From the IMG/VR virus record IMGVR_UViG_3300042564_002819, positions 266,025-330,024 of that record: a DNA stretch of 64,000 nucleotides, one strand, 5' to 3'. Both the position numbers and the translations under genes were made by a program. Below are positions 29,910 to 64,000 of the stretch, piece after piece. Position 1 is the first letter of the stretch, and every line of letters starts with the position of its first letter. The notes beneath the pieces were generated by a model. The model made no database searches, was not told where the DNA came from, and saw only the letters and a program-made list of their open reading frames with translations.

Positions 29910-30482
29910 ATGTGTAAGTTAGTTTTTGTTTATAGTTCTATGAATTCCGGTAAAAGCCTAGCTGTTCTTACCAAAAATTATATGTTAAAAGAAAAAGGTT
30001 TTAAGACTGTGCTCATGAAGCCGGCAGTTGATACTAGGACTGCGGCAACTGTGGCTACACGCTTAGGCTTAGAAGAGCCCTGTGTTGTACTAGGAACAAC
30101 TGATTTGCCTAGTCATACTATACTAAAATCAGCACACGACAAGCCTGATTTTATTATTGTTGACGAAGCACAGTTTTTAACAAGCGAACAAGTTTGGGAC
30201 CTAGCTGGCTTAGTCGACAACTGGGGCATAAACGTGTATTGCTATGGTCTACGACTTAACTGGCAAGGAGAGTTTTTTACAGGATCGGAAGCACTGATGA
30301 AAATTGCTGATGTGCTAGAACCAATCGAAAACTTCTGTCAAATAAATAAAGGAGCACTAGCATTCTTTCATATTAAAAAAGCAGGTGGCGATAATCCTGT
30401 AGAAGTTGGAATGGAAGACATGTATGACACTGCGTCTAGAAAAGCCTGGAAGCAGTGGTATGACACAAAAAGGCCTCTGTAG
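29910..30482 (+). CDS. tdk: Thymidine kinase
   Basis: YSSMNSGKS, KPAVDTR, IIVDEAQFLT, YGLR. Confidence 0.92.
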   Translation: MCKLVFVYSSMNSGKSLAVLTKNYMLKEKGFKTVLMKPAVDTRTAATVATRLGLEEPCVVLGTTDLPSHTILKSAHDKPDFIIVDEAQFLTSEQVWDLAGLVDNWGINVYCYGLRLNWQGEFFTGSEALMKIADVLEPIENFCQINKGALAFFHIKKAGGDNPVEVGMEDMYDTASRKAWKQWYDTKRPL

Positions 30483-30548
30483 CTCAATGGATAGAGCAGC
30501 AGACTTCGAATCTGTAGGTTGGGCGTTCGAGTCGCTCCAGGGGTACCA
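30473..30548 (+). tRNA. tRNA-Arg(TCG)
   Basis: GCAGA-CTTCGAA-TCTGT; CCA; overlaps tdk stop. Confidence 0.9.
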
Positions 30549-30610
30549 AAATAACACTTGATCTCTTACTTTGCATAGTGTAAGCTGTAAGTATAGTAAA
30601 GGAGAATCAA

Positions 30611-30790
30611 ATGTGGAAACTTTATATTATGGAATCTGAACGCGGTTGGGGTCAACGAGTTGACGAAATACTAAAGTTCGACACGTATGAAGAGGCCGAT
30701 AAATACAAAAAAGAATTTAACAGTAAAAACAATCTTCCTGAAGTGCCTGATTGGTACATGTATGCAGATGGACCTGTTAAAGTAGATTAA
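30611..30790 (+). CDS. Small hypothetical protein (59 aa)
   Basis: SD AGGAGA; MWKLYIMESERGWGQRVDE...VPDWYMYA. Confidence 0.7.
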   Translation: MWKLYIMESERGWGQRVDEILKFDTYEEADKYKKEFNSKNNLPEVPDWYMYADGPVKVD

Positions 30791-30874
30791 GTCGCTGTGG
30801 TGTAATGGTAGCCACGACAGCTTGAGGTGCTGTTGCCGCAAGGCGTGGGAGTTCGAATCTCCCCAGCGACACCA
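30791..30874 (+). tRNA. tRNA-Leu(GAG)
   Basis: ACAGC-TTGAGGT-GCTGT; variable arm; CCA. Confidence 0.92.
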
Positions 30875-47647: not shown

Positions 47648-48205
47648 ATGGCACAAACTTTTCAACGAGGCGATATTGTTCGCAAAATTAACGGTAGAAC
47701 ACATATTGAAGTTACTGACAGCTACGGTAACTGCATCTATGGCAAGTATCTGCACACTGGTCTAAGCACTGGTAGAATTGACACTAGAAATCTTGTAAAA
47801 GTTGATGAAGAAATTGAACAAAAAGGAAACGGATCAATGAAAGGCAAACTATTTAAAGTTAAAGCAGACGGCGTCTATGGCATCGGTCTTGCTGTAGACA
47901 GCACTGGTCAATACGTGCTGGAAATGAAAGACGGCAGCGGAGTTCGCTCTTTTGCAAAAAAAGAAGTTGAAGTTGTTATGCCTTTCACTTTTAGCGTCCA
48001 GTTTAACGGTGTTGGTACTGAATACAGCTACCTTGGCAAAGAAGGTACCGTAAAGGTTGGCGATTTGCTACTAAAGCAAGACGGCACAAAAGGTATTACT
48101 ATTGCTAAGGTTACTGCTGTTAACACTAAGAGCGACAAGGCTACTAAGTATTTTGACGGCGTTAAGATCGTAACTGAAAGCATTGATAATGAGGTTATCG
48201 AGTAA
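47648..48205 (+). CDS. Hypothetical protein
   Basis: TTGACA/TATACT promoter at ~47583-47611. Confidence 0.65.
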   Translation: MAQTFQRGDIVRKINGRTHIEVTDSYGNCIYGKYLHTGLSTGRIDTRNLVKVDEEIEQKGNGSMKGKLFKVKADGVYGIGLAVDSTGQYVLEMKDGSGVRSFAKKEVEVVMPFTFSVQFNGVGTEYSYLGKEGTVKVGDLLLKQDGTKGITIAKVTAVNTKSDKATKYFDGVKIVTESIDNEVIE

Positions 48206-48786
48206 TGAGCGATATTTGGGTTATCTCGGATACCCATTTCAATCATGCTAACATCTTAACTTTTAAGGACGGCGCCACGGGTAAACTTGTCCGTGGCGAT
48301 CGTTTTTCGTCTGTAAAAGAAATGGACGAATTTATGATTGAAAGGTGGAATAGCGTTGTAAAGCCTGGAGACAAAGTTTACCATCTTGGTGATGTTATGT
48401 TTGGTGACAGAGAATACTTCCAAAAACTATGGCCTAAACTGCACGGACAAAAGCGTCTAATTGTTGGTAATCACGACGACATTAAATATTTGAGCAGCGG
48501 CGGCTTTTTTGCTAAAGTTCACATGTGGCGTATGTTTCCTGAATTTGGTTTGGTGTTTAGCCATGTTCCTTTGCACAAAAGTTCACTAAAACGTCACTGG
48601 ATTAGAAAAGAAGATCATACATTTCTTGGCTACTGGTGGAACCGATATAAAGTAAGAAATAAGACTATGTTAAATGTGCATGGGCATATTCATCAGAATC
48701 CAAGTCCCTGTGGTCCCTATCGTAATATGAGTGTAGAAGCAATTGACTATACTCCTGTTAATATTGAAGATTTGAGAATCATCTAG
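48205..48786 (+). CDS. Metallophosphoesterase
   Basis: SDTHFNH, HLGDV, GNHD, SHVP, HGHIH. Confidence 0.9.
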   Translation: MSDIWVISDTHFNHANILTFKDGATGKLVRGDRFSSVKEMDEFMIERWNSVVKPGDKVYHLGDVMFGDREYFQKLWPKLHGQKRLIVGNHDDIKYLSSGGFFAKVHMWRMFPEFGLVFSHVPLHKSSLKRHWIRKEDHTFLGYWWNRYKVRNKTMLNVHGHIHQNPSPCGPYRNMSVEAIDYTPVNIEDLRII

Positions 48787-48890
48787 TATAGAATCAACAA
48801 ATAAAATCTTGACAGATAAAACGTTTTATAGTATAAATACTGTGTAAGCCAGAGAGGCTCACACTTAACCGCAAAAGGAGTTTTTGCAAA

Positions 48891-49967
48891 ATGAAATATG
48901 ACGCTCTAGTCTTTATCGGCCGGTTCCAGCCGTTTCACAATGGACACAAGGCAATTGTTGATGCCGCCCTTGAACGAGCAAAAGAAGTAATCATTGTAGT
49001 TGGTTCTAGCTTTTCTTCAAGGAATATCCGAAATCCTTTTACATTTGATGAACGCAGACAGATGATTAAAGCTGTGTTCCCGCAGGAGAACGTTAAAGTC
49101 GTTCCTGTTAGCGATTACCCGTATGATGATAATAAATGGGTTCATGCTGTGCAAAACGTAGTTCGCGGTGCGATGCGTTGGAGTGCTGATCCGATTCGAG
49201 TTGGCCTTATCGGCCATGAAAAGGACGGATCTAGCTACTACTTGAAAATCTTCAAGCCGCTAGGTTGGGGTAACGTTAGCGTAAACAACGTCGACGGCGT
49301 TAATGCAACAGACATTCGCAATATGTTGTTTGCATCTGCTCCGGATAGTTCAACTATTCTTCCAACTATTGTCCATAAAATTTATGAACAATTTGTTCAT
49401 AAAACTATGAATAAACAGGCAGTAGAAACTATGCACTCACTGATTATAAAAGATGGAGTTGTATCACCATGGTTTGAAACGCTGTTCCAAGAATACCAAA
49501 TGATCAAGAAGTACAAGGAAGCATGGAAAGCTGCTCCATTCCCTCCTACTTTCATGACTGTTGATGCTGTTGTTGTTCAAAGCGGACACATCCTTCTTGT
49601 GAAACGTGGCGACATGCCTGGTAAAGGTCTTTGGGCTTTGCCCGGTGGGTTCCTTAATCAAGGTGAAACAATGCTTGACGGTGCCATTCGTGAACTCAAA
49701 GAAGAAACTAAAATCAAAGTTGCTGTGCCTGTACTAAAGGGTTCTATTAAAGCGTTTAACACTTTTGATGCACCTAACCGCAGCCAGCGTGGACGTACTA
49801 TTACACAGGCGTTCTACATTGACCTTGGCTTTGCAGAAGAACTTCCTAAAGTAAAAGGCAGCGACGATGCAGAAAAAGCGTTTTGGGTTCCGTTTCACAA
49901 AGTGAAACAAGAACTTATGTTCGAAGATCACTTTCATATTATCGACCATTTTGTTAACATTGGGTAA
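48891..49967 (+). CDS. nadM: Bifunctional NMN adenylyltransferase / ADP-ribose pyrophosphatase (NadM-Nudix)
   Basis: IGRFQPFHNGH, NPFTFDER, Nudix box GGF..GETMLDGAIRELKEET. Confidence 0.93.
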   Translation: MKYDALVFIGRFQPFHNGHKAIVDAALERAKEVIIVVGSSFSSRNIRNPFTFDERRQMIKAVFPQENVKVVPVSDYPYDDNKWVHAVQNVVRGAMRWSADPIRVGLIGHEKDGSSYYLKIFKPLGWGNVSVNNVDGVNATDIRNMLFASAPDSSTILPTIVHKIYEQFVHKTMNKQAVETMHSLIIKDGVVSPWFETLFQEYQMIKKYKEAWKAAPFPPTFMTVDAVVVQSGHILLVKRGDMPGKGLWALPGGFLNQGETMLDGAIRELKEETKIKVAVPVLKGSIKAFNTFDAPNRSQRGRTITQAFYIDLGFAEELPKVKGSDDAEKAFWVPFHKVKQELMFEDHFHIIDHFVNIG

Positions 49968-49971
49968 AACT

Positions 49972-50265
49972 ATGAGAATTATTGAACCTGGTAAAGTCGG
50001 CAAAACGTGGACCATTAAACACCGTTGCACCGGTTGGGGGAATAGCGACAATGGTTGCGAAGCACTTCTTGAACTGGAATTCGACGATCTTAGATTTTAC
50101 GAAGGTCAAGAATTTCCTTGGCGAGTTAGCGAACCTGCTGTATGTTTTAAGTGTCCGTGCTGCGGAAAAATTACTGACCTTGGGCTAAATGATTGGCCCA
50201 CAGGTTACCGAAATCTTGAACGGTGGTCTAGTGAATGGTGTGATGCCAGACCTGACGCTGCTTAA
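49972..50265 (+). CDS. Zn-ribbon-like hypothetical protein
   Basis: CTG...GC...CPCCG. Confidence 0.6.
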   Translation: MRIIEPGKVGKTWTIKHRCTGWGNSDNGCEALLELEFDDLRFYEGQEFPWRVSEPAVCFKCPCCGKITDLGLNDWPTGYRNLERWSSEWCDARPDAA

Positions 50266-50317
50266 GAAAAAGTCCAACTCAGAGAGAGTTGGCATTAACG
50301 TTTAGAGGAGTTCTAAA

Positions 50318-51772
50318 ATGACAAACGTACTAAATCTACTAACTGCTATTATTCGCACTGACAGCTATAAGCTGAGCCAGTGGCTACAATATCCAAAGGA
50401 CACTGTCCGTATTAGTTCATACATCGAAAGTCGTGGTGGCGAAGACGAATCGGTATTCTTTGGTCTACAAGCGTTCATTAAACAGTATATGATGACACCG
50501 ATTACTGTAGCAGATATCAATCGTGCTGAACTTATTGTAAAAGCACACGGACTGCCTTTCAACAGAGAAGGTTGGGAAATCATCGTCAAAGAATACGGCG
50601 GCATTCTGCCGTTGGAAATCGAAGCTGTTCCTGAAGGTACCGTTATGGAGACCCATAACGTGCAAGTGCAGATTGTTAATACCGATCCACGCTTGTTCTG
50701 GTTGACCTCATATGTTGAAACTGCAATGCTTCGCGGCATTTGGTATCCTTCAACTGTTGCTACAAAGAGCCGTAAAATGAAGAAACTCATTGCTGCTGCT
50801 CTTGAACTAACTAGCGACGTTCCTGTTAACGATCAAATCATGTTCAAGCTACACGACTTTGGTGCTCGTGGTGCAAGTTCTTCTGAAACTGCAATGCTTG
50901 GTGGTATGGGTCACCTTGTTAACTTTATGGGTACTGACACTGTGGAAGCACTTGTTGGTGCAATGGAATATTACAACACAGACTCTGTACCTGGGTTTAG
51001 TATTCCTGCTAGTGAACACTCAACAATCACTAGCTGGGGTGGTCCTGCTGGAGAAGTTGTAGCATTTGAAAACATGATCAATACATTTGCCGGTCCCGGT
51101 AAACTGTATGCTTGTGTTAGCGACAGCTACGACATTTACTCTGCCGCACGTGACTTGTGGGGCGGCGTTCTAAAAGAAAAAGTCATTGCTGCCGGCGGCA
51201 CCTTGGTGGTACGTCCGGACTCAGGTGATCCTACTACAGTTCCGATTGAAGTTATTGGCATCCTTATGGATCGCTTTGGATACACTGTTAACAGCAAAGG
51301 CTACCGAGTACTTCCTCCTTACATCCGTCTAATCCAAGGAGATGGTATCAACGAAAAAACTTTGCCTAAGATCTTGTCAAACATGGTTGAAGCAGGTTAC
51401 AGCATTGATAACATTGCATTTGGTATGGGCGGTGGCTTGCTACAAGCGTGGAACCGTGATACACTCAAGTATGCTATGAAAGCTAGTGCTAGACAGGATA
51501 CTGAGGGTGTATGGCACGATGTCTTTAAAGATCCGATCTCAGACCGCGGCAAAGTGTCTAAAAAAGGTCGTCTTGGATTAGTTTATGAGTGCGGGATTGG
51601 AAACTGCGGTTATAGAACTCTTCCAAAGTCGGTTGCTGACAAAAAAGGCAACCTACTGAGAACTGTATATCGCAACGGTGAACTCTTAATTGAGGACACT
51701 TTTGAAAATATTCGCAATCGTGCAAAACTTAAAGTGGAGGAATACACTCATGATGTCGTTGAAAGATATTGA
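50318..51772 (+). CDS. nadV: Nicotinamide phosphoribosyltransferase
   Basis: TDSYK, LHDFGARG, SIPASEHS, VSDSYD, VRPDSGDP, QGDG, FGMGG. Confidence 0.95.
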   Translation: MTNVLNLLTAIIRTDSYKLSQWLQYPKDTVRISSYIESRGGEDESVFFGLQAFIKQYMMTPITVADINRAELIVKAHGLPFNREGWEIIVKEYGGILPLEIEAVPEGTVMETHNVQVQIVNTDPRLFWLTSYVETAMLRGIWYPSTVATKSRKMKKLIAAALELTSDVPVNDQIMFKLHDFGARGASSSETAMLGGMGHLVNFMGTDTVEALVGAMEYYNTDSVPGFSIPASEHSTITSWGGPAGEVVAFENMINTFAGPGKLYACVSDSYDIYSAARDLWGGVLKEKVIAAGGTLVVRPDSGDPTTVPIEVIGILMDRFGYTVNSKGYRVLPPYIRLIQGDGINEKTLPKILSNMVEAGYSIDNIAFGMGGGLLQAWNRDTLKYAMKASARQDTEGVWHDVFKDPISDRGKVSKKGRLGLVYECGIGNCGYRTLPKSVADKKGNLLRTVYRNGELLIEDTFENIRNRAKLKVEEYTHDVVERY

Positions 51773-51897: not shown

Positions 51898-51922
51898 AAA
51901 AAGGGCCTTCGGGCCCTTTTTT
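51898..51922 (+). terminator. Intrinsic terminator
   Basis: AAAAAGGGCC-TTCG-GGCCCTTTTTT. Confidence 0.88.
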
Positions 51923-53583: not shown

Positions 53584-53610
53584 TAAAAGGGCCCATTGGG
53601 CCCTTTTAGT
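53584..53610 (+). terminator. Intrinsic terminator
   Basis: TAAAAGGGCCC-ATT-GGGCCCTTTTAG. Confidence 0.8.
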
Positions 53611-55104: not shown

Positions 55105-55194
55105 GGAGAGTTGGTTGAGCGGCCGATAACACTCGTCTACTAAACGAGCAGGGGGTAATGCCCCTCGTGGGTTCGAATCCCACACTCTCCGCCA
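55105..55194 (+). tRNA. tRNA-Ser(ACT), unusual A34
   Basis: CTCGT-CTACTAA-ACGAG; long variable arm, G73, CCA. Confidence 0.88.
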
Positions 55195-55211
55195 AAAATA
55201 TAAATACTTAC

Positions 55212-55583
55212 ATGCTAATAAATGAAATTTTTACCGGGTATACATTAAAAGACTGGACAACTGTTGAATTGCTGGAAAGTTCTGGTAATTGGATGACCAC
55301 TCAAACGACTGCATATAAAAAAGGATTAAAATTCTATTCAAAAAATGCAGTCGTTATGAACAGTTTAAGTGAATTGCTTGGGTTTATACAGCAACATACG
55401 TCACCACCGCCAACTGATTCTTATCCTCCAAAATTTAATGTACACATGATTCCAAAACATAAATATTATTCCAGAGAACTTTGGTCACATCTAAAAGGAC
55501 AAAATATTGGACTATTGTTTAGTGTTGAACCAGGAGTTATAAATTTAAGATGTATAGGAACACATGACGGATGCGGTATTTAA
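55212..55583 (+). CDS. RelE/YafQ-like protein
   Basis: WSHLKGQNIGLLFSVEPGVINLRCIGTHD; TAAATA 55201-55206 then ATG. Confidence 0.5.
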   Translation: MLINEIFTGYTLKDWTTVELLESSGNWMTTQTTAYKKGLKFYSKNAVVMNSLSELLGFIQQHTSPPPTDSYPPKFNVHMIPKHKYYSRELWSHLKGQNIGLLFSVEPGVINLRCIGTHDGCGI

Positions 55584-55804
55584 AAAATATATTGACACAC
55601 ATCTCTAACTATGTTACTACAGTAATAACAAAACTAGTAGGAGCAAAGACAGTGTACAACGAAAGTGATATGACTAACATTGAAACTGTTCAATCGCTTG
55701 AAAAGCATCTCGAAGAAATTGCAGTTGAAAAACCAAAACCGAGACGCGGCAGACCGAAAAAAGATAAATAAAAGATAAATAAAATAAAGAGGAAAAGACT
55801 TTCT

Positions 55805-55897
55805 ATGAACTTAACGAGTGCATCATCGCTAGTATGGACAAACGGATTACAAAATCCGGGCAATGATCTATGCTCGGAGGGTTATGGAAACGGTTAA
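55805..55897 (+). CDS. Putative attenuator leader peptide 2 (30 aa) for tRNA array 2
   Basis: MNLTSASSLVWTNGLQNPGNDLCSEGYGNG; SD AGAGGA; GGAGGGTT at 55876-55883. Confidence 0.72.
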   Translation: MNLTSASSLVWTNGLQNPGNDLCSEGYGNG

Positions 55898-55920
55898 CAA
55901 TGAGTTAACAAAAAATTCCA

Positions 55921-55956
55921 AAAACCCTCCAAGCAAGAAGCTTAGGAGGGTTTTTT
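55921..55956 (+). terminator. Attenuator terminator 2
   Basis: AAAACCCTCC-AAGCAAGAAGCTT-A-GGAGGGTTTTTT. Confidence 0.87.
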
Positions 55957-56102
55957 AATATGAACACGAAAGTTTTAAGAGACTATAAGGCACTACTAAA
56001 AGACTACAACGAAGGCAAAATTAGTTACAAAGAATTTGTTGATCAAACACTTCCGCTGTGGAATAAATTAAACAACTTGTTCGAAAAAGATTAAAAAAGC
56101 AG

Positions 56103-56188
56103 TTGACATAGAGTAAAACATACACTATATTAACTAAACAAACAAAAAATAAAACGTAACGCAAGTTACACGCTCTTTGACAATTTAG
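56103..56188 (+). promoter_or_regulatory. sigma70 promoter, hairpin and boxA-like antitermination site
   Basis: TTGACA-17-TATATT; GTAAC-GCAA-GTTAC; GCTCTTTGACAATTTAG. Confidence 0.7.
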
Positions 56189-56268
56189 ATTTGTTGTTTA
56201 CATCGTAAGATGTAGTAAACAACGCTCACTTAGACGCAAGTCGATAATAGTGGGGGTAAGTAGAGAAT

Positions 56269-56409
56269 GACTCTACTTACACGTATTAACTGGTAGCTGG
56301 TTCGATTCCGGCGTAGAGTCTAGGTGACTATGAAAGGTTTGATTCCTTTGTACTACTGGTGTAGCAAATTGGACGACAGTCCGCCAAGTTAGTACGTGTA
56401 AGTAGAGTC
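56269..56409 (+). ncRNA. Long-stem RNA with two T-loop arms
   Basis: 17-bp perfect stem; GCTGG-TTCGATT-CCGGC and AAAGG-TTTGATT-CCTTT. Confidence 0.55.
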
Positions 56410-56677
56410 GAGCAATTGAATTATTCGATGCTGTGAAGTATTTCTAACAGCATTTGATGATTGTGCCATGTGGTAAAAAGATTGCTTACAGCTAGAAAAA
56501 AGCTGACTACAATAATACACGGTAATAGAAAAGACCAAATCTTTTTTAACATCGTGTATTTATAGAAAAAACTAGTGCAGGAGGATAACTCTGTAAGTCA
56601 CAAGAACAACGGTGCCGCATGACTCAATTGCGGTTAAATTACCCGAGTAGTGCCGGGCAGAGCCAAACACACAATGT

Positions 56678-56753
56678 TCCTCGTTAGCTCAGTTGGTAGA
56701 GTATTTGACTGTTAATCAAAGTGTCGCTGGTTCGAGCCCAGCACGAGGAGCCA
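56678..56753 (+). tRNA. tRNA-Asn(GTT)
   Basis: TTTGA-CTGTTAA-TCAAA; CCA. Confidence 0.93.
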
Positions 56754-56822
56754 AAATTGAGAAGGGGATAAACACGGCAGTCTCATTGCGTAGCAACGGT
56801 GCCCTTTCTTTTAGAATAATGC

Positions 56823-56898
56823 ATCGGTATAGCTCAGCTGGTAGAGCAGCGGTCTCCAAAACCGCGTGTCCTGGGTTCGAATCCTAGTGCCGGTGCCA
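56823..56898 (+). tRNA. tRNA-Trp(CCA)
   Basis: GCGGT-CTCCAAA-ACCGC; CCA. Confidence 0.93.
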
Positions 56899-56905
56899 AA
56901 AATAC

Positions 56906-56997
56906 GGATTGATGGGTGAGAGGCTTAAACCAGCAGATTGCTAATCTGTCGTACCTTGTAAAGGGTACCGAGGGTTCGAATCCCTCTCGATCCGCCA
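56906..56997 (+). tRNA. tRNA-Ser(GCT)
   Basis: GCAGA-TTGCTAA-TCTGT; long arm; CCA. Confidence 0.93.
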
Positions 56998-57008
56998 GAA
57001 TAAGATAC

Positions 57009-57083
57009 GGGCTGTTGGTATAGTTGGGAACACAGTAGCTTTGCAAGCTTCAATCACCGGTTCGAACCCGGTACGGTCCACCA
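57009..57083 (+). tRNA. tRNA-Ala(TGC)
   Basis: G3:U70; AGC-TTTGCAA-GCT; CCA. Confidence 0.9.
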
Positions 57084-57142
57084 AAATAATGCGGGATTAA
57101 CTCAGTGGTAGATAAATACTTTAAATAGGAGATACTCTACCA

Positions 57143-57556
57143 ATGGCTAAAACGTTCAACTGTTTAAATTGTAGTAAAGAAAGTAAATGGAGTTATAGCA
57201 GCACTAACAAGTATTGCAGCGGCGATTGCTTTCAAGAACACAAATGGAAAACTGTAAAAAAACTTGAAGTAGAAGCAGGGTTAGTCAATGACGGAAGCCC
57301 TGCGTTAAAAAAATACCTTGTTGAAACAAAAGGTGAATGCTGTGAAGAGTGCAAAGTTGGCACTGTTTACAACGGAAAGCCATTAACACTAACTGTTGAT
57401 CATATTGATGGTAATAGTGATAATAACTTTCCAGGCAACCTTAGACTTTTATGTCCTAATTGTCACAGTCAAACTGAAACATACAAAGGACGAAACAAAA
57501 AGAATAGTGCTCGTTCTCGATATATGAGAAAGTATAGAGATAATTTGCGGAATTAG
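57143..57556 (+). CDS. HNH homing endonuclease
   Basis: CEEC...LTVDHIDGNSDNN..NLRLLCPNCHSQT; SD AGGAGA. Confidence 0.92.
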   Translation: MAKTFNCLNCSKESKWSYSSTNKYCSGDCFQEHKWKTVKKLEVEAGLVNDGSPALKKYLVETKGECCEECKVGTVYNGKPLTLTVDHIDGNSDNNFPGNLRLLCPNCHSQTETYKGRNKKNSARSRYMRKYRDNLRN

Positions 57557-57621
57557 CTCAGTGGTAGAGCAGGGGTTTTACACACCTCAGGCCGGGAGTT
57601 CGACCCTCTCATTCCGCACCA
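57547..57621 (+). tRNA. tRNA-Val(TAC)
   Basis: GGGGT-TTTACAC-ACCTC; CCA. Confidence 0.9.
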
Positions 57622-57732
57622 AGTTTAGACTGGATATAATCACCCCTTGTGAGGGTGGCCCAAGGACTCAGTAACGAGATACAGCGAAGGGTTGTTGGTC
57701 AAGGCTGCAAACAGCCCAGTCTAAAGCAATAC

Positions 57733-57821
57733 GGACACTTGGCAGAGATGGATTATTGCACCGGTCTTGAAAACCGACGAACCGCAAGGTTCCCAGGGTT
57801 CGAATCCCTGAGTGTCCGCCA
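57733..57821 (+). tRNA. tRNA-Ser(TGA)
   Basis: CGGT-CTTGAAA-ACCG; long arm; CCA. Confidence 0.92.
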
Positions 57822-57897
57822 TAAGCACACTAGCATCAGGCTAGTCCAGACCGTAAGGTTAACGGTGACAAGCGGGGAGAGACCCGCACAAAAATAC

Positions 57898-57974
57898 GGC
57901 CTGTTAGTCGAGTGGTTTAAGATGCCTGCCTGTCACGCAGGAGATGATGGGTTCAATTCCCATACAGGTCGCCA
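57898..57974 (+). tRNA. tRNA-Asp(GTC)
   Basis: CCTGC-CTGTCAC-GCAGG; CCA. Confidence 0.93.
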
Positions 57975-58126
57975 AATTGAAAGGAAGGCTCATAGTTTAC
58001 GTTTAGCCCGTTACGACGGTTTGGGCGGAAAATGGTTGAGTCACGGCACGGGCGGGTCGGGGGCTGCGTGACGGCATTGAACTATGAAGCAGTTGTCGGT
58101 CTGCGTTAACAAACACCGTCAAAATT

Positions 58127-58200
58127 GCGGGTATGGTGTAGCGGTAACATGCGAGCCTTCCAAGCTCTTGTCACGAGTTCGAATCTCGTTACCCGCTCCA
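58127..58200 (+). tRNA. tRNA-Gly(TCC)
   Basis: GAGC-CTTCCAA-GCTC; U73; CCA. Confidence 0.93.
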
Positions 58201-58225
58201 ATTTATCCGTATGTGAGAGGACAAT

Positions 58226-58492
58226 ATGAAAACAGAAGATGAAAAGAGAGAATTTTACGAGCGTTGCTCCTCTATGTTAGGAATAGCTCACGTTTACAAC
58301 ACGCCAGTTCCACGACGCAATAGATGGAACGCAAGACGACTGGGCAACGGACGTTATCCAGGATTTGGACTAATACAGTGCTACGGAAACGGAGCAAGAG
58401 TAGTTAGTCGACAAGGAACACGTATGTTTTATACATACGAAGCAGTTTATGAATATTTGCAGATTGTGCTTGACGCAACTGCAAAAGCGTAG
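58226..58492 (+). CDS. Hypothetical protein
   Basis: SD GAGG; RWNARRLGNGRYPGFG. Confidence 0.7.
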   Translation: MKTEDEKREFYERCSSMLGIAHVYNTPVPRRNRWNARRLGNGRYPGFGLIQCYGNGARVVSRQGTRMFYTYEAVYEYLQIVLDATAKA

Positions 58493-58507
58493 TATAAAAA
58501 CTATAAC

Positions 58508-58583
58508 GCCCTTATAGCTCAGCTGGTAGAGCATCTGATTTGTAATCAGAGGGTCGGCGGTTCAAGTCCGTCTGGGGGCACCA
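58508..58583 (+). tRNA. tRNA-Thr(TGT)
   Basis: TCTGA-TTTGTAA-TCAGA; CCA. Confidence 0.94.
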
Positions 58584-58590
58584 AAATTAT

Positions 58591-58666
58591 GTCGCGTTAG
58601 CAAAAGGTTAATGCGTGTCCTGTGCAAAGGACAAGGACGGTGGTTAAACTCCCCGACGCGACTCCA
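58591..58666 (+). tRNA. Atypical tRNA, Cys(GCA)-like, 8-nt anticodon loop
   Basis: GTCGCGT/ACGCGAC, U73, CCA; TGTCC-TGTGCAAA-GGACA; bulged T-stem. Confidence 0.55.
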
Positions 58667-58672
58667 AATAAT

Positions 58673-58754
58673 GCGGATGTGGTGTAATGGTAGCCACGCT
58701 GGTCTTAGAAGCCAGTGCGTAAGCGTGAGAGTTCGAGTCTCTCCATCCGCACCA
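58673..58754 (+). tRNA. tRNA-Leu(TAG)
   Basis: CTGGT-CTTAGAA-GCCAG; CCA. Confidence 0.92.
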
Positions 58755-58798
58755 AAATATTTCTTATCTTAAAAAGTTTTAAATTTAGAAAGATTAAC

Positions 58799-59242
58799 AT
58801 GCAATTTTATGAAAAAGTAACTTTTTTACCAAGCATTCCAGAAGGTTTAATAAAACCTTTAGATATAATCGAATCGATGCCGAATGTTTTTCCAGATCCG
58901 GATTACGCTCATACTTATGCCAGCTATAAGGCAAATGACGATTTACAAGCTTGGGCACAAAGTTATTTTGACTTTCCTGTACTTGCAAGATATCAGGTAA
59001 TTAAACAACAATTGCCTATTCATGTTGACGTTGGAATTGTAGGAATAAAATATAACTACCTTATTAGCAGGGGTGGTGACGATGTAAAAACAAGATGGTG
59101 GGATAGTGTAGAAAATCCTTCAAAAATACTTTTTGAAACTACTTCGCCATTACGTGTGTGGCACAGCTTAAACATCGAAGTGCCACACGATATAACAGAA
59201 ATTAGTTATCCTAGAATTAGTGTAACTATAAGAAAAAAATAG
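58799..59242 (+). CDS. Hypothetical protein, possibly cupin/2OG-Fe(II)-like
   Basis: PIHVD...PHDI...RISVT; ATG after the tRNA. Confidence 0.55.
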   Translation: MQFYEKVTFLPSIPEGLIKPLDIIESMPNVFPDPDYAHTYASYKANDDLQAWAQSYFDFPVLARYQVIKQQLPIHVDVGIVGIKYNYLISRGGDDVKTRWWDSVENPSKILFETTSPLRVWHSLNIEVPHDITEISYPRISVTIRKK

Positions 59243-59270
59243 TAATAACTTTTTTAAAGAAAAATACTGT

Positions 59271-59346
59271 TGGGAAGTAGCTCAATTGGTAGAGTAGCGG
59301 ACTTTGAATCCGTTGGTTGGTGGTTCGAATCCACCCTTCCCAGCCA
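59271..59346 (+). tRNA. tRNA-Gln(TTG)
   Basis: GCGGA-CTTTGAA-TCCGT; U1-A72; CCA. Confidence 0.93.
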
Positions 59347-59352
59347 AGATAT

Positions 59353-59429
59353 CGGAGTATAGCACAGCCTGGTAGTGCGATGGTTTTGGGTACCATAGGT
59401 CGAGGGTTCGAATCCTTCTACTCCGACCA
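59353..59429 (+). tRNA. tRNA-Pro(TGG)
   Basis: ATGGT-TTTGGGT-ACCAT; CCA. Confidence 0.92.
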
Positions 59430-59646
59430 CGATTAAACTGTTGATCTAACCTCGGACTCGAACAAATAGCCATAGGCTTAGGCAGGTAGTACGGCGGATT
59501 AGTGTTAGACAACATTCGGACCAAGTAATCCGTGAGGTCCAGCTATTAGTGATGGCGGGGACGAACAAGCGGCTGATTTGGTATCAGTCGTGAGGCGGTA
59601 AGCTGCACCATAGGTGTCGTAGGCCGGGACTTGTTCAATTTATTAT

Positions 59647-59724
59647 CTGGGTATAGCTCAGTCTGTGAAGAGTGCTCGCCTTGGAAGCGAGAGGTCGCTG
59701 GTTCAAATCCAGTTACCCAGACCA
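59647..59724 (+). tRNA. tRNA-Pro(TGG), second copy
   Basis: CTCGC-CTTGGAA-GCGAG; CCA. Confidence 0.88.
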
Positions 59725-59731
59725 AAATAAC

Positions 59732-59806
59732 GCGGTGTTGGACAAGATGGATTGTCAGAGGATTCTAAACCTTAGTAGGCAGGATCGTTACCTGTACGCC
59801 GCACCA
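59732..59806 (+). tRNA. Atypical tRNA with CTA (amber-suppressor) anticodon
   Basis: GCGGTGT/ACGCCGC, A73, CCA; D-stem GACA/TGTC; TT-CTA-AA at canonical 32-38; T-loop ATCGTTA. Confidence 0.6.
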
Positions 59807-59889
59807 ATACACACATATGATGCCGTAGCCCGACGCTGGTATGTGTGAAACCTAAATATCGGGCATGTAATTTAATAAAGGAAAGAAAA

Positions 59890-60456
59890 ATGTCGTAGAT
59901 TGAATATGCTTGTAAAGATGTGGTGTTCCACTTTAACAAAAAACACTTGGAAGATGAAACTATTCCGATGTGGGTGATTAAGTTTCGAGGCGAAACCTAT
60001 TATGTAAATCATGTCGAATGTAGTGTTCCGTGGAGTACAAAAGAAACGCCTGATAACAATCACACTAAAGGCAGTATCAAAGTCAAGGATTGTTTAGTTA
60101 TTATTGATGATGAGAACTGTGCTAACATTCGTGTGTTAACTCCAGCAGATCGTTTGCGTCTTACTAAAGAACAAACTGTAAGAGTTATTACCGAGCAAGG
60201 AGCAAAACTGCGTACTGCACTACAGAACATGGCACATGGTCCGATTAAGTTAGCAGGTGGAGGATGTGGCACTACTTGGTATATCACAGATATTCCCAGT
60301 AAGAAACATTTAACAATACTACAACTACAGATTCCTTATATTAGGCAATTGATGCCCAATGAGGATTATTACAAGAAATATGATCAAACATCTTCAGATA
60401 CTGAATGGTTAGATGATGATGACGACTACGAGTGGGAAGACCTTTATGAAAATTGA
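59890..60456 (+). CDS. Hypothetical protein; probable true start 59890 with in-frame TAG at codon 3
   Basis: SD AAGGA; ATG TCG TAG ATT GAA TAT GCT TGT AAA GAT GTG, in frame with track ORF 59920-60456. Confidence 0.65.
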
Positions 60457-60625
60457 AGTGCCTCACTCGTTACTAAAAGAAGTCTGTGCTACAATTCGTC
60501 AATTCAAATTAAGGCACGGGCCATTCTACAAACTGTTAAATAGCTATAGGATATATTTGTATCCAAGTAGTAAATTAAGTTTGTTTTTGATTAAACATTC
60601 TAGCACTGTTACAGTGCTAGAATAA
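60446..60625 (+). CDS. Small hypothetical protein
   Basis: ORF overlapping the upstream stop. Confidence 0.45.
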   Translation: MKIEVPHSLLKEVCATIRQFKLRHGPFYKLLNSYRIYLYPSSKLSLFLIKHSSTVTVLE

Positions 60626-60626
60626 T

Positions 60627-60701
60627 GCGGGCGTAGCTCAGGGGTAGAGCGTCACCTTGCCAAGGTGAATGTCGTGGGTTCGAATCCCATCGCCCGCTCC
60701 A
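60627..60701 (+). tRNA. tRNA-Gly(GCC)
   Basis: TCACC-TTGCCAA-GGTGA; CCA. Confidence 0.95.
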
Positions 60702-60719
60702 ATTGTTGAAAGATATTGT

Positions 60720-61301
60720 ATGAGTAAAATAGAGCACTTTTATCATCTTCCGCACTTCGAAGAAGAATGGTTTACATATTCGGCTTTATATTCTGATATG
60801 GTAGCTAAATTTCCATCCGGAAGTAAGTTTGTTGAAGTCGGTTGTTGGAAGGGAAGATCTGCTGCTTATATGTGTGTAGAAATTGCTAATTCAAAAAAAG
60901 ACATTGATTTTTATTGTGTTGACTTTTGGCATGTATCAGCAGAGCATGAAATAGAAGAACCCCATCTAAAAAATTTGTATGAAATTTTTCTTTCTAATAT
61001 GAAACCAGTTGAAGCTTTTTATAAGCCAATGAAAATACCGTCGTCTGATGCTGCAAAAAAATTTAAAGACGAAAGTTTAGATTTTGTTTTTATTGATGCT
61101 GGACATCAATACGATGAAGTAAAAGATGATATTCTTGCATGGTATCCAAAAATTAAAAAAGGTGGCATACTAGCAGGACATGATTTTTATCCAACTGAGC
61201 CAACTTGGGGAGATGTTTCTAAAGTAGTAAACGAACTTTTTCCAAATAATTATGAAGTTTTAATAGAACAAAGTTGCTTTCTAGTAAATAAGCCGGTATA
61301 G
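60720..61301 (+). CDS. Class I SAM methyltransferase (Methyltransf_24-like)
   Basis: FVEVGCWKGRS, DFVFIDAGHQY, GGILAGHD. Confidence 0.88.
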   Translation: MSKIEHFYHLPHFEEEWFTYSALYSDMVAKFPSGSKFVEVGCWKGRSAAYMCVEIANSKKDIDFYCVDFWHVSAEHEIEEPHLKNLYEIFLSNMKPVEAFYKPMKIPSSDAAKKFKDESLDFVFIDAGHQYDEVKDDILAWYPKIKKGGILAGHDFYPTEPTWGDVSKVVNELFPNNYEVLIEQSCFLVNKPV

Positions 61302-61365
61302 CTGAGTGGTTTAGCAGCTGATTAGTAATCAGCTGACGGGAGTTCGATTCTCTCTACCGGCACCA
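61292..61365 (+). tRNA. tRNA-Thr(AGT), unusual A34
   Basis: GCTGA-TTAGTAA-TCAGC; GCCGGTA/TACCGGC; CCA. Confidence 0.88.
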
Positions 61366-61400
61366 AATCTAAATTTTTTATTAATTAATAGGTATCCAAG

Positions 61401-62156
61401 TTGAAAATAGTCGACGAAAGAAAAGATCCAAATTTTGGAACAGTAATGAATTTTGAACATATTAGTTTGCCTCCTCAAGGGTATAACGGTAAACTGTTTT
61501 TAGATTTTTCTAAGTATGCTAATTTTGATTTTGAAAAAATGGATACAGAAATATGTTTAGCATTATCAAAAATTGATTTAAATAAATATCCTATTGTTTC
61601 GGGGGTTATGCCTCCAAAATTAAAATACGGAATATTTGAAAATGAAGTAATGTACAACTTTACTGGAGATAGAGAAAATTTAAAAAATCTTTCTCCAATG
61701 GAGATGCGTAAATTTTTGTTTTTTAAACACAAAACTCTTTTACCTTGGTTCTTTGTTGTAGACTTAAAACCGAGTCTCTTTTTTGAAAGATCGGAAGATA
61801 AACATCCGTGGAGCGAAGTTAGTAAACTTACTCCATATACAAGACAGTGCATTGAGAGTCTTCCTTTCAAATCAATAGGCAGAGTAGTTATATATGGATC
61901 TTGGCCACAAGCTGAAGTACCATGCCACAGAGATTGGATACCCGACGGTGTTTTCCATCATCATATAAATCTTAATCCTGGTGGATACAGACCAGTCTAC
62001 ATTTATGATCCTGAAACAGATACAAAGAATTATTTACCGGAAAGCTATAAGTTGTATGCTTATCAAACAACCGATTACCACGGCGTAGATGCTCTTACGC
62101 ATTTTAGTTATACAATACGCATAGACGGAATTTATAATGACGACGTAGAATTGTAA
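61401..62156 (+). CDS. Putative 2OG-Fe(II) oxygenase-like protein
   Basis: IGRVVIY...VPCHRD...DYHGVD...IRIDG. Confidence 0.55.
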   Translation: MKIVDERKDPNFGTVMNFEHISLPPQGYNGKLFLDFSKYANFDFEKMDTEICLALSKIDLNKYPIVSGVMPPKLKYGIFENEVMYNFTGDRENLKNLSPMEMRKFLFFKHKTLLPWFFVVDLKPSLFFERSEDKHPWSEVSKLTPYTRQCIESLPFKSIGRVVIYGSWPQAEVPCHRDWIPDGVFHHHINLNPGGYRPVYIYDPETDTKNYLPESYKLYAYQTTDYHGVDALTHFSYTIRIDGIYNDDVEL

Positions 62157-62230
62157 TTTACAAATTTGAAAACGTTAAAAAACGATAATATAAATACTGT
62201 AAATTATTAACAAATAGTGAAATATATAAA

Positions 62231-62992
62231 ATGAATTATCACATAAAAAACTTTATTATCCCTATACATGTCTTATTTTTAGTATCACTAATTGGTATGT
62301 ATTTAAATATAATCGATTTTCATATTTGGTTATTTTTAATAGGGTGGACTTTGATCTATGGGCTAGGTCTTGTTGTAGGATTTCATAAATTGTTATCCCA
62401 TAGCTCTTTTAAAACAAACAAATACATATCTTATGTGTTAGCTTACTTAGGATGCTTAGGAATTAGCGGATCACCTATATGGTGGGCTGCTATACATAGA
62501 GGACATCATCATGCTCATACTGAGACTGAAAAAGACCTTCAAAGTCCACGTCGTGGATGGCTTACATCTTACATAGGTTGGCAGTTTGGTGAAGAAACAA
62601 GTAAAATAAGTTTAAAGTATGCATCTGATTTAATAAAAGATCCTTTTTATCTTTTTTTACACAAGAATTATAGATTAGTTGTTTGGAGTACAGTGATTAT
62701 TGTTGGTATGTTGTCACCATCTGTTGCAGTTTCATTATTAATATTTCCGATGATTGCAGCACACCATGGAGAAAATATTACCAATTCATTTGGTCATAGC
62801 AGGTTTGCTGGTTACAGAAATTTTAATACCAACGACGACACTATAAATAACCCATTGTTAGCATTTATAACTTGGGGTCAGCTTTTGCATAACAATCATC
62901 ATGCTAAGCCAAATAACGATAGTTTTGCCATTAAATGGTTTGAATTTGATCCAACTTCTCCTTTTGTATGGATTTTAAAAAAACTAAAATAG
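62231..62992 (+). CDS. Fatty-acid (delta-9-type) desaturase
   Basis: His boxes GFHKLLSH, HRGHHHAH, LHNNHH; TM helices. Confidence 0.92.
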   Translation: MNYHIKNFIIPIHVLFLVSLIGMYLNIIDFHIWLFLIGWTLIYGLGLVVGFHKLLSHSSFKTNKYISYVLAYLGCLGISGSPIWWAAIHRGHHHAHTETEKDLQSPRRGWLTSYIGWQFGEETSKISLKYASDLIKDPFYLFLHKNYRLVVWSTVIIVGMLSPSVAVSLLIFPMIAAHHGENITNSFGHSRFAGYRNFNTNDDTINNPLLAFITWGQLLHNNHHAKPNNDSFAIKWFEFDPTSPFVWILKKLK

Positions 62993-63049
62993 TTACAATA
63001 TAAACATTTTTCTGTAACAGAAAAAAAATAAAAAAGTTGAAAAAAGTGG

Positions 63050-63127
63050 TTGACCTTTGAGGCAACATGCACTATATTAACTACATAAGCAGCAAATGTG
63101 TTGCTTACACGCTCTTTGAAAATTTAG
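63050..63127 (+). promoter_or_regulatory. sigma70 promoter, hairpin and boxA-like site
   Basis: TTGACC-17-TATATT; TAAGCAGCA-AATG-TGTTGCTTA; GCTCTTTGAAAATTTAG. Confidence 0.7.
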
Positions 63128-63249
63128 TAACTTAACTGCAATAATCAACAGTTTAGCGAAAGGCTAAAGATTGTGGTTGTGCTGAGTAATTAACAGTTTA
63201 AATCAGCAAGTGATGCGTGATTAGGTAAACTGTTGTTTATTGCAGTTTT

Positions 63250-64000
63250 TAAGATGGGCGGCTTAGCGTCCACGTAAGGGTAAGTGCGGTAACGCACCCA
63301 AAGGCAGGTTTCCTATAAACTGCCGCCAGCAATGGTCCACCTAAGCAAGCCTGAACTAAGGTTGACTCGGTTTAACCCGAAAGCAACCTCCGTCCTTAGG
63401 CGGGCGGTAGGCAGTAAGTTAGAGTTGTAGTCCGAAAGGATAGGCACAGAGCCGGTCGGTGAGTGCTAAGAGGCTGTGGTGGCTGAACTGCAACATACCA
63501 AACTAACGAATGCTGAAGGTTAACAGGTAGCTACACTGTCTGAGCCCGCAAGCAAAGGCATGGTAGCATCACAAGAGTGGAAGGGTTAGGCCCCGGATAC
63601 TTGAAGTGACGTTGAGTAGCTCGCAAGGCAAAAGACAGTCGGTGTGTTGTATACTGTATCTAACAAGGTATGGTGCAACTGGGACAGCACATCGAAGTAG
63701 GTTCGCAATATTGCATAACGGTAATGCAATCGTCTTATGAAACGATGGATTGTAGGTTCAACTCCTACTATTGAAACAAAAGCGAAAGACTGTCCCGGTA
63801 CGTTGTGAAAGGTGGTTAATGCCACACTCGCAAGAGAATGTGGTCTACGGATGCTCGCAAGGCTGATGTAGTTGTTCGGAAAGATAGCGTAAGGGTTTAG
63901 CGACTCTGAACTGCTCGCAAGGCAGACGAAGGATAGAAGGACGAGTAGCAACGTGCGACGAGAGAAACGCCACTCTCCAAAAAAGGCACCACTGGGAGAT
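63250..64000 (+). ncRNA. GOLLD-like giant ncRNA (probably truncated by window end)
   Basis: No credible ORF; many GNRA hairpins; GAGTAGCTCGCAAGGCAAAAG, GGTGTGTTGTA...GCAGCACATC-like and AAAGCGAAAGACTGTC blocks resemble GOLLD as recalled; next to tRNA array. Confidence 0.7.

Follow-up and report, generated by a model that had tools for sequence, protein, structure and literature searches.

Phages can rebuild NAD+ after the action of NAD-depleting defence systems through the NARP2 pathway, which consists of NadV plus NadM (bioRxiv 10.1101/2024.02.11.579819), whereas none of the papers returned by our searches describes how phages control it. Two classes of NAD+ riboswitch are known, and they sit before nadA and pnuC. 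The NAD+-I riboswitch (nadA motif) is a cis-acting leader found in Acidobacteria, with two stem-loops in tandem of which the second holds the ribosome binding site, and it needs the ACANCCCC bulge and an internal loop in each domain (PMC7297122). The NAD+-II riboswitch (pnuC motif), known from streptococci, has one stem (P1/P1a) with an internal loop plus a pseudoknot over the ribosome binding site (PMC7749635; PMC10085692). The guanidine-II riboswitch (mini-ykkC) is built of two small hairpins with covarying stems, conserved loops and a linker of variable length, with the Shine-Dalgarno sequence at the second hairpin, and its two loops are the same ACGR tetraloop and pair with each other. In pyr leaders, the apex of the PyrR binding loop reads CC-AGAGA-GG (consensus ARUCCAGAGAGGYU) and is accompanied by a purine-rich internal bulge, and the binder is a phosphoribosyltransferase that moonlights as an RNA-binding regulator (PMC7430163). 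In phage translational operators (MS2/R17 coat protein on the replicase start; T4 RegA, gp32 and gp43), a weak hairpin with free stem sequence and fixed loop bases holds the ribosome binding site and is clamped by a phage protein, often autogenously; these operators are single hairpins or unstructured sites and none is known to be tied to NAD metabolism. Further, the promoter-early-stem-loop cassettes of T4-type phages occur in dozens before unrelated early genes and are thought to drive module shuffling.

We analysed a window of 64,000 nucleotides (positions 266,025 to 330,024 of the 330-kb lake phage record IMGVR_UViG_3300042564_002819), in which both NAD-rebuilding genes carry the same small two-hairpin mRNA leader (Table 1). 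Each leader consists of a stable 7–9 bp hairpin capped by AGAGA, a short A/C-rich spacer almost free of G, and a weak A-U hairpin whose tip is the Shine-Dalgarno GGAG and which ends at the ATG. A sequence-only reading had previously described two such hairpins before nadM and nadV, with near-identical loops and linker and with different but pairing stems, and this observation proved to be real and far from chance. The combined pattern of AGAGA, TTAAC and GGAGT with gaps occurs only at these two places in the window, against 0.00 expected in 100 shuffles, and among the 17 hairpins with an AGAGA loop in the whole genome only these two are followed by a Shine-Dalgarno hairpin. Two details needed refinement. 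The second hairpin is better read as 7 pairs, because the first G of GGAG pairs with the U (or C in relatives) after it and closes a GAG triloop, so that the Shine-Dalgarno sequence is partly paired rather than simply sitting in the loop. Also, the TTAAC linker is not conserved across the family, whereas its A/C-rich, G-poor make-up is. The gene names given by that reading were right: NadM reaches the NCBIfam equivalog cut-off for bifunctional NMN adenylyltransferase/Nudix (424 bits against 397), and NadV reaches that of NF006629, an equivalog named nicotinate phosphoribosyltransferase (588 bits against 405), while Pfam agrees and its NAMPT_N match supports the NAMPT reading.

Table 1. Features of the two leaders and their genes (window positions, + strand).
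Feature	Position	Description
Promoter of the nadM leader	48809-48838	sigma-70-like; TTGACA (48809-48814), 17-nt spacer, TATAAA(T) (48832-48838)
nadM leader	48842-48890	complete leader
nadM hairpin 1	48842-48864	9 pairs with one A.C mismatch; core AGCC-AGAGA-GGCT (48847-48859); pentaloop AGAGA (48851-48855); -10.4 kcal/mol, z -3.8
nadM spacer	48865-48870	single-stranded
nadM hairpin 2	48871-48887	7 pairs around a GAG triloop; GGAG at 48877-48880; -4.5 kcal/mol; ATG after 3 nt (48891)
nadM	48891-49967	bifunctional NMN adenylyltransferase / Nudix ADP-ribose pyrophosphatase, 358 aa
Small ORF	49972-50265	Cys-rich, 97 aa; no leader of its own; probably co-translated with nadM
nadV leader	50274-50317	complete leader
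nadV hairpin 1	50274-50292	7 pairs; pentaloop AGAGA (50281-50285); -10.1 kcal/mol, z -3.5
nadV spacer	50293-50300	single-stranded
nadV hairpin 2	50301-50317	7 pairs around a GAG triloop; GGAG at 50307-50310; -2.7 kcal/mol; ATG at once (50318)
nadV	50318-51772	nicotinamide phosphoribosyltransferase, 484 aa

The stems covary across relatives. In a MAFFT alignment (A6) of 35 leaders, 96.5% of cells are paired, 12 of 14 pairs show changes on both sides, and the covariation score is 0.988, against 0.248 in shuffles and at most 0.198 with slid partners; a model-fitted alignment (A3) gives the same picture. Positions A1, G4 and A5 of the pentaloop (A-N-N-G-A) and the GGAG tip stay fixed while the stems are free, and the spacer is 5–19 nt long across the family, with A 46%, C 25%, U 24% and G 5%. 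Hairpin 2 is uniformly weak (mean −2.8, sd 0.9 kcal/mol), even in GC-rich phages. Nevertheless, some lineages change the loop of hairpin 1 in both leaders together (GWUGUA in Serratia phage BF and GGGG in lineage L118), and several keep hairpin 2 but lack hairpin 1 (X1, Marzo, phiM12 and the nadV leader of L001).

The element is largely restricted to NAD-salvage genes. Covariance models, of which the first (R1) was too narrow for the G-AUAGA-C variants and was replaced by R2, gave two hits in the 330-kb genome at 67.9 and 60.9 bits, with the next best at 14.6 bits. In 80 related viral loci, 56 distinct copies, all on the sense strand, lie directly 5′ of NadM (27), NadV (23), the NMN transporter PnuC (4) or two unknown small genes of the same clusters (phrog_1843, phrog_33851). 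These loci were fetched through NadM or through a leader word, so that only the whole-record scans are unbiased: in five relatives of 251–519 kb, totalling 1.75 Mb, hits fall only at the NAD locus, and in the cultured phages DSS3P8 (146 kb) and LucasX (306 kb) only before nadM and nadV. A scan of IMG/VR with the 17-mer of the nadM hairpin 2 gave 45 occurrences, of which 29 sit before genes of NAD clusters, most of these carrying hairpin 1, while none of the other 16 carries it. The Shine-Dalgarno hairpin is present at 64 of 118 NAD genes against 4 of 1395 other ORFs (0.3%). In bacterial and archaeal genomes, an exact scan with the same 17-mer met at least 120 stretches, and the 80 loci examined, a sample rather than proof of absence, carry hairpin 2 alone, at no more than 32.8 bits. 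The motif is clustered on the NadM tree, with 7 changes against 22.9 in shuffles, and every complete motif-bearing genome that we checked also has NadM and NadV; the restriction to NAD genes is partly explained by common descent of the cassettes. Occurrence before unrelated genes, which had been set beforehand as grounds for rejection, was not found. The element shows conserved secondary structure with compensatory changes, a fixed position relative to the start codon, occurrence on the sense strand only and a coherent gene set, which are the features of a structured cis-regulatory mRNA leader.

Compared with the described systems, the present hairpins are uninterrupted helices in the 35 aligned copies, with 5- and 3-nt loops, and lack the bulge and internal loops of NAD+-I. 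No pseudoknot or covarying pairing between loop and tail, as in NAD+-II, was found. Rfam has no such family: searches at the gathering score in the 64 kb, at E up to 10 in 48780–50400 and at E up to 5 in the DSS3P8 and LucasX loci returned only tRNAs, with no match to the NAD+-I or NAD+-II models in any of them, nor to the guanidine-II or PyrR models in 48780–50400. The architecture is like that of guanidine-II, but the two loops (A-N-N-G-A and GAN) differ from each other, from the ACGR tetraloops of guanidine-II and from the loops of the phage operators, and the gene context of guanidine-II is unrelated. The PyrR apex consensus is matched at 13 of 14 positions by the nadM copy of the window only; the bulge is absent, about 40% of the copies counted (18 of 52) read G-AUAGA-C or G-AAAGA-C instead, and the controlled genes are for NAD salvage and not pyrimidine synthesis. 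PyrR remains the best precedent for an enzyme of nucleotide metabolism controlling its pathway through such a hairpin. However, the type I phosphoribosyltransferase of this phage is only weakly XPRT-like, is not PyrR-like and is missing from DSS3P8 and LucasX. The nadM copy resembles a T4-type cassette in being an early-type promoter followed at once by a stem-loop, but the motif occurs only twice in 330 kb, at NAD genes, and the nadV copy has no promoter. No U run follows either hairpin 1 on the + strand, and the hairpins look like intrinsic terminators only on the gene-free minus strand. The literature searches found no paper on such a leader, and it looks like an undescribed control element for a known counter-defence pathway.

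The sequence-only reading had inferred a translational operator or an NAD/ADP-ribose-responsive RNA co-regulating the pathway, and this interpretation is partly supported: comparative evidence strongly supports one shared RNA element co-regulating the NAD-salvage genes, whereas the choice between operator and sensor is not settled by these results, and the loss or replacement of hairpin 1 in some lineages argues somewhat against a metabolite aptamer. Our best, though tentative, reading is a pathway-specific translational operator of 45–50 nt on each NAD-salvage cistron (nadM and nadV here, and also pnuC and the two unknown small genes in relatives). In this view, hairpin 1 is a stable recognition module, the G-poor spacer stays single-stranded, and hairpin 2 is a deliberately weak helix of about −3 kcal/mol whose 3′ arm is the spacer up to the start codon. 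A trans-acting protein would bind the loop of hairpin 1 and clamp hairpin 2 so that the 30S subunit cannot open it, while without the protein the hairpin would melt and the gene would be translated. Because the motif travels with the NAD gene cluster through phages of unrelated hosts and NadM and NadV are the only proteins that always accompany it, the most likely binder is one of these two enzymes, giving autogenous feedback, possibly modulated by its nucleotide ligands. The uniformly weak hairpin 2, the stable hairpin 1 and the invariant loop bases on free stems are operator-like features, and the co-inheritance with NadM and the joint change of the loop in both leaders of some lineages also speak for this reading. 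The analysis demonstrates the structure, its conservation and its restriction to NAD-salvage genes, while action on translation, the existence of a binder and its identity are inferred from sequence alone. No RNA-binding domain is known in NadM or NadV, and where hairpin 1 is missing a two-site operator would have to work with one site. Both apex classes, C-AGAGA-G and G-AUAGA-C, coexist in one 519-kb genome, so that the apparent co-evolution of loop and factor is weak.

A less likely but possible alternative is a constitutive expression cassette inherited together with the horizontally mobile NAD genes, in which hairpin 1 protects the 5′ end of the message and insulates the ribosome binding site from upstream sequence, the spacer is a ribosome standby site and hairpin 2 merely presents the Shine-Dalgarno sequence. 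The promoter directly 5′ of hairpin 1 in nadM leaders, the A-rich and G-poor spacer, the weak hairpin 2 with an optimal distance from Shine-Dalgarno sequence to start codon, the dispensable or replaced hairpin 1 in some lineages and the co-inheritance with NadM all fit. The promoter was read directly, since a scan requiring T at the sixth −10 position skips it and a promoter count that rejected the TATAAA(T) box was uninformative; the same TATAAAT box lies 3–8 nt before hairpin 1 in the nadM leaders of the close relatives, which places the hairpin, by inference, at or near the mRNA 5′ end. A purely structural role, however, does not explain invariant loop bases across phages of alpha- and gamma-proteobacteria and cyanobacteria, nor why unrelated genes of one pathway (nadM, nadV, pnuC, phrog_1843, phrog_33851) share an element that is so rare elsewhere, and the nadV copies are internal to the operon and not at a 5′ end.

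A very small riboswitch is unlikely but not excluded. The two hairpin tips, possibly with the A-rich spacer, would bind NAD+, NMN, ADP-ribose or nicotinamide and shift the balance between the closed and open Shine-Dalgarno hairpin, so that salvage enzymes are made when a defence system depletes NAD+. The gene association is that of the known NAD+ riboswitches, occurrence across unrelated hosts fits a universal ligand, and guanidine-II shows that two small hairpins with conserved loops and a free linker can form an aptamer. Against this, there is no internal loop, bulge or covarying pseudoknot, the spacer length varies, and loop 1 is replaced or hairpin 1 lost while the genes and hairpin 2 stay. 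Kissing of the two loops and a pseudoknot between loop 1 and the 3′ arm of hairpin 2 were rejected, as checked by eye only: the loops are not complementary, loop 1 shows no covarying partner in the 3′ arm or the start region, and loop variants (AGUGA, AUAGA, AAAGA) are not matched by changes in the arm. More broadly, the leader could be a sensor coupling phage NAD+ reconstitution to the NAD state of the infected cell, either as a third and smallest class of NAD-pathway riboswitch or as an RNA-enzyme-metabolite switch in which NadM or NadV binds its own leaders unless loaded with substrate. This remains a doubtful possibility; NadV, NadM and PnuC would then be switched on when a system such as Thoeris or a SIR2 enzyme destroys NAD+, and the element would represent a new riboswitch or enzyme-RNA switch class.

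An RNA processing signal or a host-factor site is still less probable. Here, a host or phage endoribonuclease, or a general host RNA-binding protein such as CsrA, PyrR, Hfq or S1, would recognise the leader, and this would cut the polycistronic message into stable monocistronic mRNAs or tune their decay. The motif does sit between cistrons of one operon (pnuC, nadM, nadV), the nadV copies share a conserved AAAG just 5′ of hairpin 1, the nadM apex resembles the PyrR loop, and GGA in a hairpin tip over the Shine-Dalgarno sequence is also the CsrA site rule. However, hosts including Ruegeria, Rhodobacter, Xanthomonas, Synechococcus and lake bacteria differ too widely for one host protein, the G-AUAGA-C variants do not fit the PyrR consensus, hairpin 1 has AGA and not the GGA expected in both hairpins of a CsrA/RsmA target in nearly all copies, a general nuclease or protein would not be confined to NAD genes, and no full motif was seen in the 80 bacterial and archaeal loci. 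Finally, although NadM carries the Nudix domain from which NrtR repressors derive (with a weak NCBIfam match of 49 bits against a cut-off of 400) and the nadM copy is a promoter followed by a stem-loop, a DNA-level operator, a recombination cassette or a functionless leftover of a duplication is very unlikely and largely refuted by the covariation, as stem sequences differ within and between genomes while pairing is kept, which is the signature of RNA and not of a protein-bound DNA palindrome, all copies lie on the sense strand, and there are only two copies per genome, always at NAD genes.

A conserved RNA element confined to these genes gives a concrete handle on the control of phage NAD+ reconstitution, and it is present in cultured, tractable pairs: Ruegeria pomeroyi with DSS3P8, Rhodobacter capsulatus with RcXuper, Xanthomonas citri with LucasX, and Synechococcus elongatus with BUCT-ZZ01. 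The element also marks unknown small genes (phrog_1843, phrog_33851, phrog_13068) as likely new parts of NAD salvage, and could serve as a search key for NAD counter-defence modules in metagenomes. The small ORF between nadM and nadV was considered as the regulator and rejected: it has homologues in the close clade but is optional, being absent from many motif-bearing phages and from a strain variant that lacks exactly this ORF, and it is not homologous to the ORF at the same place in DSS3P8. Its AF2 model is beta-rich, with no significant PDB match. No near-identical DNA was found in GenBank phages, where the closest NadV is 60% identical, whereas a 315-nt contig of a freshwater metatranscriptome run matches 50366–50680, within nadV, exactly.

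The window forms the last 64 kb of a single viral contig of 330,024 bp with 37% G+C, which comes from lake water, and near-identical DNA has been recovered in lake and river metagenome runs of 19 studies. The window also carries 31 tRNA genes in two arrays, typical of a very large phage. All genes around the NAD-salvage locus run on the + strand, in the order phosphoesterase, nadM, a small Cys-rich ORF and nadV. Both enzymes were confirmed by Pfam and NCBIfam: NadM is a bifunctional NMN adenylyltransferase/Nudix protein at equivalog level, while NadV carries the NAMPT N-terminal domain and the phosphoribosyltransferase domain. Two strong GGGCC/GGCCC hairpins flagged as terminator-like probably mark the ends of the transcription units after nadV and after the next gene.

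The sequence-only reading had described a shared two-hairpin leader in front of both NAD-salvage genes, and this observation proved correct to the base. Before nadM, a sigma-70-like promoter is followed 4 nt later by hairpin 1, a short spacer and hairpin 2, whereas before nadV there is no promoter and the leader follows the stop codon of the small ORF. The composite pattern was found nowhere else in the window, with 0.00 occurrences expected, and of the 17 AGAGA-loop hairpins in the whole genome, only these two are followed by a hairpin over a Shine-Dalgarno sequence.

Coordinates of features at the NAD-salvage locus, elsewhere in the window and at loci outside it (L, locus; G, genome)
Feature	Position	Remarks
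Phosphoesterase	window 48205-48786	phrog_547
Promoter, -35 box	window 48809-48814	17-nt spacer to the -10 box
Promoter, -10 box	window 48832-48838	
nadM leader, hairpin 1	window 48842-48864	9 pairs with one mismatch, loop AGAGA, -10.4 kcal/mol
nadM leader, spacer		six bases
nadM leader, hairpin 2	window 48871-48887	-4.5 kcal/mol
nadM	window 48891-49967	ATG at 48891
Cys-rich ORF	window 49972-50265	97 aa, between nadM and nadV
nadV leader, hairpin 1	window 50274-50292	7 pairs, loop AGAGA, -10.1 kcal/mol
nadV leader, spacer		eight bases
nadV leader, hairpin 2	window 50301-50317	-2.7 kcal/mol; ATG follows at once
nadV	window 50318-51772	
Terminator-like GGGCC/GGCCC hairpins	window 51898-51921 and 53584-53608	
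tRNA arrays	window 22728-30871 and 55105-63776	31 tRNA genes in all
Unknown gene families with the leader, phrog_1843, phrog_33851 and phrog_13068	L011:3268-3906; L018:497-856 and L034:3642-3992; L122:7453-7602	inside NAD clusters of relatives
Type I phosphoribosyltransferase and overlapping ORF	L272:1471-2414 (G000:C1:27887-28830)	outside the window
ORF with HIGH and KMSKS motifs	L135:1545 onward (G003)	306 aa
ClpP-like protease gene	L094:1940-2996 (also L120, L124)	another phage

GenBank phages hold nothing close, whereas in IMG/VR two contigs carry NadV at 74% identity and 78 loci carry NadM at 27-80% identity. The first relative that was read (locus L002) already settled the main question, as both of its leaders have an AGAGA-capped hairpin and a GGAG-tipped hairpin with entirely different but complementary stems. 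A covariance model built from 12 copies (R1) found only the two known sites in the phage's own genome, at 67.9 and 60.9 bits, the next best hit scoring 14.6 bits at E 0.24. In the 80 loci, R1 found more than 60 sites, all on the sense strand, and every one with E below 0.01 lies directly before NadM, NadV, a PnuC-family NMN transporter (Pfam E 2e-37) or one of two unknown genes, phrog_1843 and phrog_33851. A broader model (R2), built from a MAFFT alignment of 35 copies that includes GC-rich variants, gave 70 hits and 56 distinct sequences, of which 27 lie before NadM, 23 before NadV, 4 before PnuC and 2 before the unknown genes. In all, three unknown gene families (phrog_1843, phrog_33851 and phrog_13068) carry the same leader inside NAD clusters of relatives and are candidate new parts of phage NAD salvage, although none is present in this genome.

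Because the loci were fetched through NadM, three checks that do not depend on this choice were carried out. First, a scan of all of IMG/VR for the exact 17-mer of the nadM-type hairpin 2 gave 45 occurrences. Twenty-nine of these lie before genes of NAD clusters, and most of the 29 carry hairpin 1 upstream; three, all from one phage, lie before a ClpP-like protease gene and lack hairpin 1; and the other 13 lie inside ORFs or before no gene. Second, whole-record scans of five relatives of 251-519 kb (1.75 Mb in all) gave only sites at the NAD locus, the 519-kb phage having four (nadM, nadV, a 50-aa ORF and pnuC). Similarly, Roseobacter phage DSS3P8 and Xanthomonas phage LucasX gave only the nadM and nadV leaders, apart from one 21-bit hit with no gene behind it. 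Third, the Shine-Dalgarno hairpin by itself is present at 64 of 118 NAD genes but at 4 of 1395 other ORFs of the same loci (Fisher's test, p = 2e-74, a figure that overstates the case because related sequences are not independent). A 306-aa ORF at a locus of genome G003, with the HIGH and KMSKS motifs of class I aminoacyl-tRNA synthetases, is likewise preceded by a Shine-Dalgarno hairpin but has no hairpin 1.

On the MAFFT alignment (A6), 96.5% of cells pair and 12 of 14 pairs show changes on both sides, and the covariation score is 0.988, against 0.248 in shuffles and at most 0.198 when partners are slid. The ends of the A6 sequences were chosen with a rule that asked for at least four inner pairs, which favours pairing a little; the model-fitted alignment (A3) agrees. 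The pentaloop of hairpin 1 reads A-N-N-G-A with its closing pair, with counts of 20 for C-AGAGA-G, 16 for G-AUAGA-C and 7 for C-AGUGA-G, besides rarer AUAGA and AAAGA forms. The tip of hairpin 2 reads A-G-GAN-Y-U, in which the first G of GGAG pairs with U in 28 copies or with C in 6 copies. The spacer is 5-19 nt long and contains only 5% G. Hairpin 2 is uniformly weak, with a mean of -2.8 and sd of 0.9 kcal/mol, while hairpin 1 is stable, with a mean of -7.4 kcal/mol.

On a NadM tree the motif is clustered, with 7 changes against 22.9 in shuffles, and falls within one subtree of 46 rows. It is present in cultured phages of very different hosts, namely DSS3P8 on Ruegeria and RcXuper on Rhodobacter (both G-AUAGA-C), LucasX on Xanthomonas and BUCT-ZZ01 on Synechococcus (G-AAAGA-C). 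Some lineages vary it. Serratia phage BF (locus L279) and locus L118 have the same two-hairpin layout before nadM and nadV but a different hairpin-1 loop in both leaders, GWUGUA in BF and GGGG in L118, whereas Xanthomonas phage X1, Stenotrophomonas phage Marzo, Sinorhizobium phage phiM12 and the nadV leader of locus L001 keep only hairpin 2. The T4-like enterobacterial phages and RSL1 gave no hit with R1 or R2, and a sample of 80 bacterial and archaeal loci that hold the 17-mer has no full motif.

Rfam 15 has no matching family, even at permissive thresholds. The NAD+-I riboswitch requires bulged domains and the NAD+-II riboswitch an internal loop and a pseudoknot, and neither class's required features are present here. 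The apex of the window's nadM hairpin 1 resembles the PyrR binding-loop consensus at 13 of 14 positions; however, the required internal bulge is missing and about 40% of the copies counted have a different apex, so this is a look-alike and not membership. The stem sequences differ between copies while pairing is kept, which excludes a DNA palindrome read by a protein, and no U run follows the hairpins on the sense strand, which excludes a terminator. Both hairpin-1 elements do score as terminator-like on the minus strand, but no minus-strand genes lie nearby, so this is probably meaningless.

The element sits exactly on the ribosome binding site, so control of translation initiation is the natural level. 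While the structure and its distribution rest on the sequence comparisons, the mode of action that follows, including a bound factor and its identity, is inference throughout. The design is the classic layout of a translational operator, namely a stable hairpin with fixed loop bases, a single-stranded spacer, and a marginally stable hairpin that holds the Shine-Dalgarno sequence and ends at the start codon. A bound factor would lock the weak hairpin and keep the 30S subunit off. The element moves with the NAD genes through phages of unrelated hosts, and the only proteins found with it in every complete genome checked are NadM and NadV. We therefore favour autogenous control by one of these enzymes, perhaps tuned by its nucleotide ligands, for which PyrR, a phosphoribosyltransferase, sets a precedent. 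This full chain is held only tentatively, whereas the weaker statement, that this is a functional, NAD-salvage-specific leader acting on translation, is in our view likely. The interpretation offered by the sequence-only reading, a translational operator or an NAD/ADP-ribose-responsive RNA co-regulating the pathway, is partly supported. A type I phosphoribosyltransferase, weakly XPRT-like and followed by an overlapping ORF with a histidine-triad-like motif, is encoded outside the window in this phage's own genome (G000) and is also present in genomes G001 and G002, but not in DSS3P8 or LucasX.

Among the alternatives, a ligand-free expression cassette made of a 5' stabiliser, a standby site and a Shine-Dalgarno-presenting hairpin is possible but less likely. 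It would explain the anatomy and the loss of hairpin 1 in some lineages, but not the fixed loop bases or the sharing among unrelated genes of one pathway. A minimal riboswitch, which we consider doubtful, fits the gene set and the independence from host, yet is weakened by the lack of any pocket-forming feature, the variable spacer, and the lineages that replace or drop hairpin 1. Processing or host-factor sites, which are unlikely, and DNA-level or non-functional readings, which are very unlikely, fit poorly.

The element belongs to a known kind, the structured cis-regulatory mRNA leader, but to no known family, and our literature searches found no paper that describes it. Its link to the NARP2 counter-defence pathway is new. 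Four cultured phage-host pairs carry it, which makes experimental work on it straightforward.

A freshwater metatranscriptome run contains a 315-nt contig identical to part of nadV, which is compatible with expression but proves nothing about starts or levels. The Cys-rich ORF between nadM and nadV is conserved in the close clade, and its AF2 model is beta-rich (pLDDT 78.7), with no PDB fold match. The search that returned the metatranscriptome contig also revealed a strain variant in which this ORF is cleanly absent (joint 49970 to 50269), joining the end of nadM to the first base of the nadV leader, which marks the leader as a discrete unit.
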